Of a stretch of DNA of 64,000 nucleotides, positions 35,321 through 59,287 are shown piece after piece; position 1 is the first letter of the stretch; every line of letters begins with the position of its first letter. Where the stretch lies: sequence record NC_047880.1; one strand, given 5' to 3'. A program made the translations under genes and the position numbers. The notes under the pieces are model-generated. The model did no database searches. It had not been told where the DNA came from and worked only from the letters and a program-made list of their open reading frames with translations.

Positions 35321-35998
35321 TTAAACAGTCACTTTGCCTTTCGCTTTAGTCTTGGTCGCTTTCTTAGCGCCAGTCTTCTGCGCAGCAGTACCAGTGTGGT
35401 GTACTGCTTTAGTTGTCACTTGCTTGCCACCCTTCAGGCGCGGCATTGGTTTCAACTTAGGCTTTTTCAGAGTCACGGAAGCTGGTTTAACTTTTGGAGT
35501 TACCAGTTTGCCGGACTTGATAGACGGCTTACGCGCTTTACGAGCGGCCAGACGTGCTTTCTGTTTTGCGATCAGGTTGCTGTAACCAGCTTTCTGTTTC
35601 GCGGCCAGGTTGGAGCGAGCTACTTTCTGACGAGCGATCAGCAGTTTGCGGATTGCTGCCTGAGATTTGGTAGTTGCTTTCAGACCGGCGGTGTATTTGC
35701 TCAGACGTTCTTTCAGGCGCTGCTCCAGGGATTTACCTTTCGCTTTAGCACGTTGACCTTTCAGGTGTTTCGCACGTTCGCCATCGAATTTTTTGTCAGC
35801 AGCATCTTTCTTAGCGGCTGGCTTTTTGGTTGCTTTGGCTTTGGCAGCTTTCGGCTTAGCAGTTTTGGCTGCTTTAGGCTTAGCGGCTTTCGCAGCTTTC
35901 GGCTTAGCAGTTTTGGCTGCTTTAGGTTTTGCTTTAGCCTTAGAACCACCTTTAACAGGGTCTTTAGGGCTGGTCAGTTTACGATTTACTTTAGCCAT
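35321..35998 (-). CDS. Histone H1-like Lys/Ala/Pro-rich DNA-binding protein
   Basis: KPKAAK(T/A)A repeats; own CTAATTTT motif and terminator. Confidence 0.8.
   Translation of the reverse strand: MAKVNRKLTSPKDPVKGGSKAKAKPKAAKTAKPKAAKAAKPKAAKTAKPKAAKAKATKKPAAKKDAADKKFDGERAKHLKGQRAKAKGKSLEQRLKERLSKYTAGLKATTKSQAAIRKLLIARQKVARSNLAAKQKAGYSNLIAKQKARLAARKARKPSIKSGKLVTPKVKPASVTLKKPKLKPMPRLKGGKQVTTKAVHHTGTAAQKTGAKKATKTKAKGKVTV
35844..35926. repeat. Direct repeat (35 bp, period 48 bp) within the H1-like gene
   Basis: gcagctttcggcttagcagttttggctgctttagg at 35844 and 35892. Confidence 0.9.
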
Positions 35999-50902: not shown

Positions 50903-52195
50903 TTATTTAGAAGACTTCTTCTTCTTTTTCTTCTTAGGTTTTTCTTCGTCGTCTTCTTGTTGATCGCCGAATGAGACGTTCAACTGACCGCTATAAATCT
51001 GCGCCATCAATTCAGTCACAGTTGATTCCAACATGATATCGGCAGGTACAGAAGTTGAGTTGAATGCGATTTCTGCATTAGCCAGCGCTTTCTGCAAAAA
51101 GATCAAGCGCACTAAGTTCACACTGATCTTATCTTGCTTAACCATGTTCAGGAACATCTTGAGTCCAGCAGACTGCCACTTGTTTGTTTCGGCGTAATGA
51201 CCGAGAACACCATGCAGCACCCAACGAGCTTTCACTACGATAGCACGAGGGTTGTTCGCTTCACGTAAGAACTGAATCACACCAATAAGATCCATTTCGT
51301 GGAATGCACCAATGACTTGAACAGCTTTGGCTTCCATTTCAATTTCAGGATCGGCTGCTGCAAGTTCTGCAACCAGCTTCTTATCGAAGTCTTCACCACC
51401 GAGCACGGACGAGTAAACGTTTTGCAACATCGAGATTGCACCACGCATCTGACCACCAGCGTATTCAGCAATCTGGTGCATTGCTGCTTCTGCTTTCTCA
51501 CGCGCTTTATCTTTCTTCGGCAGGATTTCGAGCTTGCCTGCGATCTCAATCAAACGAGTGTGAATGATATCAGTCGGTACAGGTCTGATTGGAAGCTGAG
51601 TCATACGACCGACCATCGTACCTTTCATCTTCTCTGGGTTCGTCGTAATGAAGATGAACACAACGTGAGCAGGTGGCTCTTCCGTAATCTTCAAGAACTT
51701 CGACTCGGCAGCACTGGACATTAAGTGGCATTCGTCGAGAATGAATACACGGCGTTTGAACAGCGCGTTACGAGATGCAGAGTCAACGATGTTCTGGCTA
51801 CCGTCAACTTTACCTGCATCACCACCCATATCGTATTCTTGAATATCAGGATGTGAGTCAGGTCCTGCATCAGCCATCTGACAGGAACGACATTTACCAC
51901 ATGCGCTGAACGTGTCGCAGTTGATGTACTTAGCAACCATGCGACCGAACGTTGTTTTGCCTGCGCCTGTGTGACCACTGATCAGAATAGTTGATGGGAT
52001 GACACCAGACTTCTTCCAGCCGCGAAAGATTTTGACGATGTGGTCTTGACCAACATAATCTTCAATACGACGTGGACGGAACTGAGCACCGAAGTTAATA
52101 GTCTTGAGTTCTACAACGTCCGTGCTCTTACTTTTCTTTGAAGGCTTATCGTCACTGAATGCACGAGCCTTCTTTTTCTTTTCTACTTTCGCCAT
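50903..52195 (-). CDS. dnaX: DNA polymerase III gamma/tau-like clamp-loader subunit
   Basis: FRPRRIEDYVGQDHIV, GHTGAGKTT, C..C..C, ILDECHLMS, FLKITEEPP, GQMRGAISML; start moved to MAKVEK. Confidence 0.93.
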   Translation of the reverse strand: MAKVEKKKKARAFSDDKPSKKSKSTDVVELKTINFGAQFRPRRIEDYVGQDHIVKIFRGWKKSGVIPSTILISGHTGAGKTTFGRMVAKYINCDTFSACGKCRSCQMADAGPDSHPDIQEYDMGGDAGKVDGSQNIVDSASRNALFKRRVFILDECHLMSSAAESKFLKITEEPPAHVVFIFITTNPEKMKGTMVGRMTQLPIRPVPTDIIHTRLIEIAGKLEILPKKDKAREKAEAAMHQIAEYAGGQMRGAISMLQNVYSSVLGGEDFDKKLVAELAAADPEIEMEAKAVQVIGAFHEMDLIGVIQFLREANNPRAIVVKARWVLHGVLGHYAETNKWQSAGLKMFLNMVKQDKISVNLVRLIFLQKALANAEIAFNSTSVPADIMLESTVTELMAQIYSGQLNVSFGDQQEDDEEKPKKKKKKKSSK

Positions 52196-52230
52196 TTTAA
52201 ATCGCCCTTTGATTTTGTCTCTACTCGCTA

Positions 52231-52239
52231 TATTTACAG
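52231..52239 (-). promoter_or_regulatory. Class-B motif CTGTAAATA
   Basis: Before dnaX. Confidence 0.7.
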
Positions 52240-52257
52240 TATTCGGCAGTGTACAGA

Positions 52258-52298
52258 CAAAAAGAAAGGACCACATCCCAAGGCGGGAGGGTCCTTAT
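52258..52298 (-). terminator. Intrinsic terminator
   Basis: AAGGACC...CCC..GGG...GGTCCTTTCTTTTT. Confidence 0.65.
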
Positions 52299-52349
52299 GA
52301 TCGAGACATAAAAGGGTGATAACAACTATCGGCAGTGGGCGCTGGCGAT

Positions 52350-52547
52350 TCAGGCAAAACTCAACTCCCAACGAGGTACAACTCGGGAGAAGGTTTTAAA
52401 GTGGCTTGGTGGATTTCGTTTGAGTTGAGCAACAGAGCGTTCAACTTCATCATAGTCTTTGATATCACTCGCAACGGTGTGAGTGACGAACGTACCGTCA
52501 GCATGAATCAAATCAGCGACAACACGGTATCGTGGGATTCTAAACAT
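52350..52547 (-). CDS. Hypothetical protein
   Basis: RBS AGGAG; CTGTAAATA motif upstream. Confidence 0.65.
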   Translation of the reverse strand: MFRIPRYRVVADLIHADGTFVTHTVASDIKDYDEVERSVAQLKRNPPSHFKTFSRVVPRWELSFA

Positions 52548-52588
52548 GTATTCTCCTGCTATAAAAAATTCTCGTCGTTATTGAATTA

Positions 52589-52597
52589 TATTTACAG
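52589..52597 (-). promoter_or_regulatory. Class-B motif CTGTAAATA
   Basis: Before 52350..52547. Confidence 0.7.
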
Positions 52598-52599
52598 TT

Positions 52600-52980
52600 A
52601 AATCCAGTTCAAATCCTGAACTAAAGTAAGACTAATCTTAAACTCCAATATGCTCTCGTAAAAACATATTGGAGTTAGCCCTCGACAGATGACGGTCTAT
52701 CGAAGACTATCCCCCTGCACTCTTGTATGTACGTCAGTGCAGGAACGTTCGCGGTCTTATGCGCTATATCTCGCAGCAGGGTTGGCAGCAGGTAGCAGGG
52801 TCCCTCGCTGCATAGCGCGGCCGCACTTCAGCCATCAGTGTTACGCGGTGTTACACTGAGCGGCCTTGACTCTTTGGCCGAGTCGGTACAAAAAAGTGTC
52901 TGGCCCACAATGAAGGCATGAAGCATTCGGGCCAGACCAAAACTTTCGAAGCAAACTCCTTATGCCTCGTTTTGTACATG
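52600..52980 (-). ncRNA. Candidate structured non-coding RNA of unknown family
   Basis: No ORF of 60 aa or more; at least 6 helices of 7-12 bp and two pseudoknot pairings; CTAATTTT motif immediately upstream (52983-52990). Confidence 0.65.
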
Positions 52981-52982
52981 TA

Positions 52983-52990
52983 AAAATTAG
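52983..52990 (-). promoter_or_regulatory. Class-A motif CTAATTTT driving the candidate ncRNA
   Basis: CTAATTTTTACATG, identical to the 36068 site. Confidence 0.65.
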
Positions 52991-53017
52991 AAACATCTCG
53001 CAATATTCAGACAATTC

Positions 53018-53605
53018 TTAGTCTAACATTGGAATAAAGTTTTCGAGGAAATGCTGGCGATCAAACGAGCTAATACGATGCGGATGATCGATATGCGCGT
53101 TCCACGGCTGGGTGAACAGCAATACGTTCTTCGGAAGTGATGATACATCTCCGACGCGCGTAAAGTTGTTCGTCACCTGAGTACGTGGGTTGTCATCAAT
53201 CAGGTAATAGCCGTCTTCACCGTGAATTGAATTCAAGAAAGCAATCTTATCGGGATGCTCTGCTGGATTCAGTACGTGAATGTGATCGAACATTGACAGG
53301 TGAGGAGCCAGAGCTTTGCGAGTATAACGTTCGCCTTTCTCATGATAACCACGATGCGTACAAACGCCGAGAGGAAATCCTTCACGCAACAGGAAAGAAA
53401 GCGTTTGAATGAAGTAATCATTCATGTCAACTTCTAACATGAAGCGACCACTCTCCAGCATATCAACGAAAGGCTTGCCGCCGATCTCAGGAGTGATGTA
53501 GCGATCTTCGACCATGATGCCGTGGCCTTGCAGATGGAGATTCATGTACAAGTGAGTACGGAATCCCGTGTCATCTAAGTCAACGTAAATAGGTTTCAAG
53601 TCCAT
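53018..53605 (-). CDS. HAD-superfamily 5'(3')-deoxyribonucleotidase (NT5C-like)
   Basis: YVDLDDT, CTHRG, K, LIDDNP, FTQPWN. Confidence 0.8.
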   Translation of the reverse strand: MDLKPIYVDLDDTGFRTHLYMNLHLQGHGIMVEDRYITPEIGGKPFVDMLESGRFMLEVDMNDYFIQTLSFLLREGFPLGVCTHRGYHEKGERYTRKALAPHLSMFDHIHVLNPAEHPDKIAFLNSIHGEDGYYLIDDNPRTQVTNNFTRVGDVSSLPKNVLLFTQPWNAHIDHPHRISSFDRQHFLENFIPMLD

Positions 53606-58899: not shown

Positions 58900-58919
58900 A
58901 TCGTGTTTACCTGATTTTC

Positions 58920-59280
58920 TATCAGCTATTTACAGATATAGAACCCAAAGCTATTCAAGGCTATACAAGATAGATCATCATAGGAAGGATAGCTACAGCG
59001 GTACAGCTATACAGCTCATAGATAGCTACGATTGTTATTGCTGGTACACATCTTTAGGCGGCACGTTTTTCAAAGAGCGAAAATGAGAAAACGATACCAA
59101 TACCTGCCCAAAGCATACCAACTAACAGCCCAGCAGAGCATTCTAGCCGACAAACCTAGGTCGTCTAAACCGTGTAAATAATTTCTAAAAAGGGAGCAGT
59201 TTTCTGAAAAAACACCGCAATTTAGAGAAAAATGAGGGCAAAACCGAATAAAATCAAAGGTTTAACCCTCGTTCGACAGA
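58920..59280. other. Long intergenic region with short GCTA/TAGC repeats and an A-rich tract (candidate origin)
   Basis: No convincing gene; 6-7 [AG]GCTA units in 58923-59030; orphan plus-strand TGTAAATA at 59173. Confidence 0.35.
58927..58935 (-). promoter_or_regulatory. Class-B motif CTGTAAATA
   Basis: Before the TV-Pol-like gene. Confidence 0.7.
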
Positions 59281-59287
59281 AATCAGA

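Follow-up and report, generated by a model that had tools for sequence, protein, structure and literature searches.

An unannotated gap in the replication gene block of phage Y3

The DNA analyzed here is a stretch of 64,000 nucleotides from sequence record NC_047880.1 (the window) that is 100% identical to Erwinia phage vB_EamM_Y3 (KY984068, Sasquatchvirus, 261 kb); window positions equal record positions minus 124000. An unannotated gap of 470 nt (52548-53017) lies between Y3_211 (53018-53605), which encodes a HAD-like protein of 195 aa, and Y3_210 (52350-52547), which encodes a 65-aa protein and is followed by the clamp-loader gene Y3_209, with all of these genes on the minus strand. A replication gene block that includes the genes for the clamp loader, SSB, polymerase A, and recombination nucleases surrounds the gap. 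An initial annotation, made from the letters of the sequence, had proposed a highly structured, non-coding RNA at this site. Thermodynamic folding and covariation among relatives bear this proposal out and strongly support the conclusion that the gap encodes a real structured RNA of ~340 nt on the minus strand, apparently of an undescribed family.

Selection on minus-strand base pairing

The minus-strand RNA had a predicted folding energy of -168.5 kcal/mol compared to -125.5 ± 5.5 kcal/mol for shuffled sequences (z = -7.8); the plus-strand fold of the gap gave z = -4.2. RNAalifold predicted 107 pairs from 17 sequences, with compensatory change in 32. An alignment of 19 sequences from the Y3, Alexandra, and SNUABM_34 clades accommodated 113 nested pairs with 95% of cells paired, whereas sliding the pairing partners by 1-3 columns dropped the paired cells to 30-44%, and 32 of the 113 pairs were compensatory compared to 4-11 in the slid controls. 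This alignment contained 218 G-U cells and 10 A-C cells, an asymmetry expected only for an RNA read from the minus strand. For the 3' core, which could be compared in 21 distinct sequences from all lineages, both sides had changed in 19 of 39 pairs, a level reached by none of 500 shuffles (0/500) and compared to 4-11 in slid controls. The initial annotation had suggested looking for covarying homologs in related phages, and these searches found both the homologs and the covariation.

The longest open reading frames (ORFs) in the gap span 57, 56, and 50 aa, in agreement with the earlier statement that none reaches 60 aa. ORFs of 50-57 aa in Y3, and the ORFs that some records annotate in the homologous region, would fit a small-protein gene, with the structure then a chance product of composition. 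Against both ideas, no ORF is shared in strand, position/frame, or length among 20 relatives, the frame is shifted by indels that are not multiples of three (a U-run of 6-12 nt and a 10-nt tandem duplication in the P5 hairpin of pEp_SNUABM_52), and neither coding nor chance can explain the compensatory changes or the G-U versus A-C asymmetry; we regard this possibility as next to nil. Compensated pairing, strand-specific G-U pairs, and the lack of a conserved reading frame are together the signature of a structured non-coding RNA, and the comparisons indicate that selection acts on base pairing of the minus-strand RNA.

Hypothetical ORFs are annotated within the homologous RNA region of several relatives, including fHeYen902_106c in the Yersinia phage (locus L081, 3271-3477), pEaSNUABM5_00214 (antisense; locus L020, 2280-2405), and one ORF in Yoloswag (record positions 170805-171275). 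These ORFs are not conserved and are probably mis-annotations, so the RNA flags several annotated 'hypothetical proteins' for correction.

Predicted architecture of the RNA

In Y3, the RNA is predicted to fold into about ten helices and one H-type pseudoknot; coordinates below are window positions given as 5' arm/3' arm on the minus strand. The 5' domain (52886-52977) begins with P1 (52977-70/52893-86, 8 bp), which encloses the P2 hairpin (52969-63/52953-47), whose loop (52962-54) carries a conserved GGAGU and three of whose pairs covary, and the long P3 hairpin (52938-23/52912-897), with six covarying pairs. A helix of 9 bp listed in the initial annotation (52898-906/52929-37) is contained in P3, which extends to ~16 pairs. 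Directly after P3 stands a U-run, U6 in Y3 (52895-90) and U5-U12 across the lineages that have a 5' domain.

The central part starts with P4, a GACUC/GAGUC hairpin (52884-80/52872-68) with GGCC in its loop; this hairpin does not vary among the 19 sequences from the Y3/Alexandra/SNUABM_34 clades, and the Rivsvirus/Yoloswag form lacks it. A GGCCG/UGGCU helix (52865-61/52834-30) encloses the P5 hairpin (52859-53/52841-35), whose loop contains invariant ACACCGCG; in this helix and P5 together, 91% of cells are paired, with one compensatory pair, and CAGUG/CACUG of Y3 is replaced by AGCG/CGCU in the P5 region of relatives. In pEp_SNUABM_52, whose gap is 97.7% identical to that of Y3, the P5 hairpin loop carries a 10-nt tandem duplication, GTAACACCGC (locus L004, ~861-880); an insertion is therefore tolerated there by the RNA. 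The long helix P7 (52824-03/52781-51) has nine compensatory pairs in two segments, an invariant GCUACCU in its apical loop (52796-90), and a conserved UAAGA bulge (52759-55). Its base, GCGG/CCGC in Y3 (52824-21/52754-51), becomes GCGAGG/CCUCGC in SNUABM_34, GGCGAG/CUCGCC in JA13, and GAACGAG/CUCGUUC in the Salmondvirus-like locus L092.

An H-type pseudoknot (52714-52748), found by screening for covarying stacks beyond the nested fold, follows P7. Stem S1 pairs ACGU (52748-45) with ACGU (52734-31) in 4 bp, and stem S2, which is P8, pairs CCUGCAC (52743-37) with GUGCAGG (52720-14) in 7 bp; the linkers are 1 nt (U52744), 2 nt (UG, 52736-35), and 10 nt (A-rich, 52730-21). An H-type pseudoknot was recovered here in each of the 15 distinct lineages searched exhaustively, whereas only 0-3 of 200 shuffles per lineage matched its score. 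S1 occurs as ACGU/ACGU, GCGC/GCGC, GCGC/GUGC, GGCGCC/GGCGCC, GGCGCG/CGCGCC, GUGCG/CGCAC, GGUGUG/CGCACC, and AAGCGC/GCGCUU, and S2 as CCUGCAC/GUGCAGG, CCGUGC/GCACGG, CCGUGU/ACACGG, CCGCAC/GUGCGG, CCCUC/GAGGG, CCCGC/GCGGG, CCCAC/GUGGG, and CCACCUC/GAGGCGG; the two stems change together between lineages, giving at least eight distinct combinations of stem sequences. With crossing stems, linkers of sufficient length, and covariation, the predicted structure has the textbook geometry of an H-type pseudoknot.

The remaining elements are a conserved purine segment after the pseudoknot (52708-52713; GGGAUA in Y3, GGAGAA or GGAGU in relatives), P9 (52707-696/52689-678), with CCGUCA in its loop and five compensatory pairs, and P10 (52677-62/52657-40). 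The arms of P10 are conserved in sequence (ACUCCAAUA/UAUUGGAGU in Y3, ACUCCAAAG/CUUUGGAGU in the Salmondvirus-like form), its distal part covaries, and it contains the perfect 12-bp hairpin (52641-76) to which the initial annotation had pointed. A 3' tail with an AGA/UCU mini-hairpin (52622-52639) has invariant columns in alignment A1 and is not conserved in the Rivsvirus, Yoloswag, Salmondvirus, and Yersinia forms.

Every helix listed in the initial annotation is present in Y3 where it had been placed, cctgcact/agtgcagg (52714-21/52736-43) among them, and that list lacked P2 (52947-69), P9 (52678-707), and the pseudoknot stem 52745-48/52731-34. The two pseudoknots it described are not upheld in the form proposed. 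A 7-nt loop complementarity between 52913-19 and 52962-68 is present in Y3, but we rejected this pairing as Y3-specific because its central pairs hold in only 2 of 19 sequences. The second proposal (52862-84) combined GACUC/GAGUC with GGCC/GGCC; both stems are present with invariant bases, the arrangement is sterically strained, with a first linker of 0 nt and a last one that shrinks to 1 nt in some relatives, and the nested pairing of GGCCG 52865-61 with UGGCU 52834-30 fits the second GGCC equally well. Other long-range stacks that we considered (the U-run with G-runs, the P2-loop GGAGU with ACUCC, and UGACG with the P9 loop) were invariant or not kept, and were rejected.

Distribution and modularity

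Conservation of the whole gap, at 68-74% identity, extends to 43 further phage records, belonging to Alexandravirus, the unclassified pEa_SNUABM_34 group, and Dickeya phage AD1, and no feature is annotated over it in any of these close-relative records. R1, a covariance model of the 3' part built from alignment A2, also located the RNA in pEa_SNUABM_5 (Rivsvirus), Yoloswag, Salmondvirus (JA13 and the JA11-like and JA29 contigs), Yersinia phage fHe-Yen9-02, and several metagenomic contigs. A pattern scan of 185,579 species genomes (one per bacterial or archaeal species) gave three chance-level matches, the best within an ORF of 263 aa and the others noise; blastn against E. coli genomes and plasmids gave no match; and a pattern scan of metagenomes returned only phage-like contigs of the same group. 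In this comparison, which left out the Pseudomonas relatives PaBG and Lu11, every occurrence of the RNA that was found falls within the enterobacterial branch of the 'hairy' PaBG-like jumbo phages.

Comparison of these forms reveals a modular organization. A universal 3' core consists of the P7 base helix with its UAAGA bulge, the pseudoknot, the GGAG segment, P9, and P10 with conserved ACUCCAA/UUGGAGU arms. The central domain (P4 to the P7 apex) varies by lineage, and the 5' domain (P1-P3) is present in every examined lineage except the Salmondvirus-like ones. R2, a model of the 5' domain built solely from the Y3/Alexandra/SNUABM_34 clades, independently detected this domain in Rivsvirus-like loci (E = 3e-5) and in Yoloswag (E = 4e-4), where the P2 and P3 stems are fully different in sequence, and gave a weak match at the right place in the Yersinia phage; an R2 search of Salmondvirus-like loci found no 5' domain. 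The Salmondvirus-like form is short (~215 nt), and in Rivsvirus and Yoloswag the RNA reaches ~430 nt and differs in its central domain.

Comparison with known RNA families

The initial annotation had excluded tmRNA, RNase P, and SRP RNA and had raised the prospect of a new class of phage non-coding RNA. Both points hold up: no Rfam 15 family matched anywhere in the 64-kb window at gathering score, ARAGORN detected no tRNA or tmRNA in the window, and the covariation in relatives defines a family that Rfam 15 does not contain. Permissive Rfam searches of the 1-kb region to E = 10, and of four relatives including Yoloswag to E = 5, yielded nothing relevant and only chance matches of snoRNA or miRNA type. 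Rfam models likewise gave no match for RNase P, SRP, or 6S RNA (relatives included), for group I and II introns or small self-cleaving ribozymes (the element also lies between complete genes), for phi29 pRNA, or for GOLLD, ROOL, HEARO, OLE, and raiA. In riboswitches and attenuator leaders no promoter is expected before the next gene; here a promoter-like site intervenes, and in L092 a terminator does as well. We found no account of this RNA in the literature on jumbo-phage non-coding RNAs, Y3, and Alexandravirus. A strongly diverged representative of some known family (RNase P, tmRNA, SRP, 6S, a group I/II intron, a riboswitch, phi29 pRNA, GOLLD/ROOL, or CsrB/RsmB) would share the general likeness of many helices and a pseudoknot, but as the Rfam 15, ARAGORN, and E. 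coli blastn searches returned no relevant match, we give this explanation hardly any weight. The novelty thus lies in an RNA family with no detectable relative among those described, a claim that does not extend to mechanism.

Several known systems are nevertheless instructive. GOLLD and ROOL, large 'ornate' RNAs with Rfam families of their own that phages often carry, are, like the Y3 RNA, phage-borne, multi-helix RNAs with pseudoknots, without an ORF, recognized by covariation, and of a function that is not known. They are several hundred nt longer, are typically located close to tRNA genes, and are spread over many bacterial lineages; the Y3 family is smaller (~215-430 nt), was found in one phage group only, and is not matched by their covariance models. 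The phi29 pRNA, the folded and protein-bound product of a tailed-phage RNA gene with its own promoter, resembles the Y3 RNA in kind only; its Rfam model does not match, its size, fold, and genome position differ, and no feature seen here ties the Y3 RNA to the portal or to packaging. Phage regulatory leaders such as that of the T4 gene 32 mRNA have comparable H-type pseudoknots, in which the first linker is short and the last one A-rich, within a replication gene cluster; the Y3 pseudoknot, by contrast, is a module of a far larger RNA, with a promoter-like site before the next ORF and, in Salmondvirus-like phages, a terminator as well. The Y3 5' domain closes with a GC-rich hairpin and a U-run, as do terminator-ended small RNAs and attenuators, but in the Y3 family a helix spans the U-run and the best-conserved part lies downstream of it. 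Finally, the GGA motifs of the P2 hairpin loop and of a single-stranded segment resemble those of CsrB/RsmB-type protein-sponge RNAs of Enterobacterales, and the Csr/Rsm system operates in the hosts; the Y3 RNA has two or three such motifs rather than a long array, lacks an Rfam match, and is conserved mostly in helices and other loops.

Putative transcription signals

The class-A promoter-like motif CTAATTTTTACATG abuts the RNA on the minus strand (52977-52990), with G52977 as the predicted first transcribed base. The initial annotation had noted that the same motif stands before a gene for an H1-like protein, and the two copies of this 14-mer, at 52977-90 and at 36062-75 before Y3_185, are indeed exact; a third copy with one mismatch (35161-74) precedes Y3_184, and all are on the minus strand. 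The H1-like gene, Y3_185 (35321-35998, minus), encodes a Lys/Ala-rich protein of 225 aa with repeated AKPKAAK-type units; among protein families it matches only a PHROG of unknown function. The spacing from CTAATT to the opening G of the RNA is exactly 7 nt in five lineages (Y3, Alexandra-type, SNUABM_34-type, Rivsvirus-type, and Yoloswag). Across the window, all nine occurrences of CTAATTTNNA (9/9) are on the minus, coding strand and lie 20-34 nt before start codons, the exceptions being the copy at the RNA and a spacing of 68 nt at the H1-like gene. The motif stands before Y3_156 of the tail module, two genes next to the head-to-tail joining gene (Y3_181 and Y3_184), Y3_185, and a glycosyl hydrolase gene, among others. 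From this recurrence we infer a promoter for the RNA at the CTAATTT motif, as the initial annotation had proposed; the late timing that it assigned to this promoter is plausible.

A class-B motif, CTGTAAAT, marks other genes: DNA polymerase A, the clamp loader, SSB, a recombination endonuclease, an HNH endonuclease, and the 65-aa gene. Its distance to the start codon is 27-43 nt at most of the genes downstream of it and 8 nt at the SSB gene, with sites at 52590-97, 52232-39, 37227-34, 20406-13, 29818-25, 38845-52, 48850-57, 56745-52, 58928-35, and 11195-202. The first of these falls within the promoter-like site of the 65-aa gene (52585-52612, minus), which is of sigma-70 type at 10 of 12 positions. 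CTGTAAAT looks like a promoter class separate from CTAATTT, and the existence of two promoter classes is in keeping with the sigma-70-family factor that phages of the group encode themselves (PMC7412058); the motifs provide a first hint of two distinct upstream classes in this phage group. If the two motif classes are read in this way, the RNA bears a motif of the structural-gene class while residing among genes of the replication class.

Location inside the replication gene block, together with the AT-rich stretch that follows P10 in Y3, could point to an element of a replication origin, where a structured, promoter-driven transcript would serve as primer for DNA synthesis and its structure would be required for a stable RNA-DNA hybrid. 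The site shows neither an extremum of cumulative GC skew nor a change in gene orientation, the alignments revealed no iterons or other repeats, and the promoter-like motif is of the structural-gene rather than the replication-gene class. An origin function is consequently very improbable in our view.

Transcript boundaries and the P3 hairpin

In every lineage with a 5' domain, P3 and its U-run (5-12 nt) resemble a terminator although the stem sequences differ. This GC-rich hairpin speaks for a cis-acting leader or attenuator. A late transcript carrying the 65-aa gene and the clamp loader would then have the RNA as its long 5' untranslated region, with P3 and the U-run as a regulated terminator and a GGAG/ACUCC pairing as the switch. 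The absence of a terminator between P10 and the 65-aa gene in Y3, and the presence of two segments that compete for ACUCC, also fit such a leader. Several observations count against it. In all lineages the RNA and the following gene are set apart by a distinct promoter-like site, and that gene itself varies by lineage (65 aa, 119 aa, or clamp loader). The Salmondvirus-like form, which has no 65-aa gene, carries a terminator ~50 nt after P10 and before the clamp-loader promoter motif; the terminator scan flagged it in L092 only, and the homologous hairpin with U9 in JA13 was read by eye. An independent RNA gene is indicated most clearly here, where the CTAATTT motif, the RNA, and the terminator make up a unit that contains no ORF. 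Furthermore, the U-run is bridged by a helix, which is P1 for the Y3/Alexandra clades and a linker helix for the forms of Rivsvirus, Yoloswag, and the Yersinia phage; functional molecules should therefore extend past the U-run.

The switch element of a leader can be assessed from the P10 5'-arm segment ACUCC, which is complementary both to the GGAG segment after the pseudoknot and to the P10 3' arm (...GGAGU...). An identical 10-mer occurs in both competing segments of the Yersinia phage (GGAGUAUGCC; locus L081, 3404-3500), and an 8-mer in both segments of JA13 (GGAGUUUA; locus L082, 3204-3293). In constrained folding of nine lineages, the alternative pairing was possible in all nine, at a stability 5-10 kcal/mol below that of full P10, and the RNA is therefore not bistable at equilibrium; we rejected an equilibrium two-state switch for this reason. 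A conserved antiterminator for P3 was sought and not found. That the alternative pairing could matter during transcription or on protein binding is speculation. Weighing these points, we consider a leader or attenuator unlikely, albeit the most serious competitor to a free-standing RNA.

The same 5' anatomy, that of a terminator-ended small RNA, could instead mean that two RNAs are made, a small RNA of ~90 nt (52977 to ~52888) that ends at the P3 terminator and a separate core RNA produced by read-through or processing. Salmondvirus-like phages, which have the core without the 5' domain, are consistent with this division. In Y3, no promoter-like motif occurs between P3 and P4, and P1 or its equivalents pair the two sides of the U-run; both features make a division into two RNAs distinctly improbable.

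A candidate trans-acting RNA

The account that we favor, with modest confidence, is that of a trans-acting, protein-bound RNA of the late class. Transcription would start at G52977, seven bases past the CTAATTT motif common to tail, head-side, and H1-like genes, and the RNA would form its own transcription unit, probably of the late class and unlike the surrounding replication genes. The folded RNA would then act in trans in association with protein, with its conserved loops and the sequence-conserved P10 helix as recognition surfaces, and the triple complementarity of GGAG, ACUCC, and GGAGU may permit a conformational change.

Several points weigh against this account. The promoter, start site, and timing come from motifs only. 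The terminator scan found no canonical terminator after P10 in Y3, and the transcript may therefore continue into the 65-aa gene. P3 with its U-run resembles a terminator 90 nt into the RNA and could halt many transcripts before the core. A search for a partner protein among the 65-aa and HAD-like neighbors identified none, and the linkage to the HAD-like gene may be synteny. The aligned sequences represent ~8 lineages, so the counts of covarying cells exceed the number of independent events; pair-type variety per position is still high despite this.

As possible roles the initial annotation had named packaging, an anti-defence decoy, and a ribozyme. A more specific version, which we advance tentatively and think unlikely, is that the RNA is a subunit of a late phage ribonucleoprotein with a task new for phage RNAs, for example in packaging, virion assembly, or host takeover, or is itself catalytic, with GGAG/ACUCC/GGAGU as a built-in switch. 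Were this true, the RNA would represent a new functional class and not just a new family. Large structured RNAs under selection and of unknown function are rare, and earlier cases led to new biochemistry. This RNA is well defined, with a clear core, a richly covarying pseudoknot, and probable transcription signals of its own, and it occurs in cultivable phages whose hosts are tractable in the laboratory; its narrow distribution in one jumbo-phage clade limits its general reach.

Neighboring genes and additional observations

In every lineage examined among the enterobacterial relatives of Y3, the RNA directly follows the HAD-like gene: all 21 of 21 IMG/VR loci that encode a relative of the Y3_211 protein have the RNA core just downstream on the same strand. 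Because gene order is very conserved in this phage group (PMC6143709), this linkage may be plain synteny. No such gap or RNA follows the distant HAD-like homologs of Proteus phage 10 and Klebsiella phage YC1. The Y3_211 protein matches PHROG 415, 'polynucleotide kinase' (E = 2e-15), and this PHROG match was the only one obtained, with none in PDB or NCBIfam. In YC1 (locus L132, 1801-4098), a DNA ligase gene directly follows the distant homolog, an adjacency that hints at a nucleic-acid end-processing phosphatase.

Searches with the 65-aa Y3_210 protein found no family or structure match. Its gene is not an obligatory partner of the RNA, as a 119-aa gene intervenes between the Y3_210 homolog and the RNA in pEa_SNUABM_5 and no 65-aa gene was found in Salmondvirus phages. 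Between the 65-aa gene and the clamp-loader motif of Y3 there is a probable terminator on the minus strand (window ~52268-52305), a hairpin AAGGACC...GGUCCUU followed by a U-rich run, which is missing from the terminator scan owing to its long loop. For the clamp loader itself, a mechanically called ORF of 457 aa (50903-52276) compares with 430 aa in the record annotation, which places the start at window position 52195; the class-B motif at 52232-39 lies inside the longer ORF, which favors the annotated, shorter start.

The window also contains a second unannotated gap, of 388 nt on the minus strand between Y3_219 and Y3_220 (58900-59287). It folds better than shuffled sequences (z = -4.1) and could contain another structured element or a long leader.

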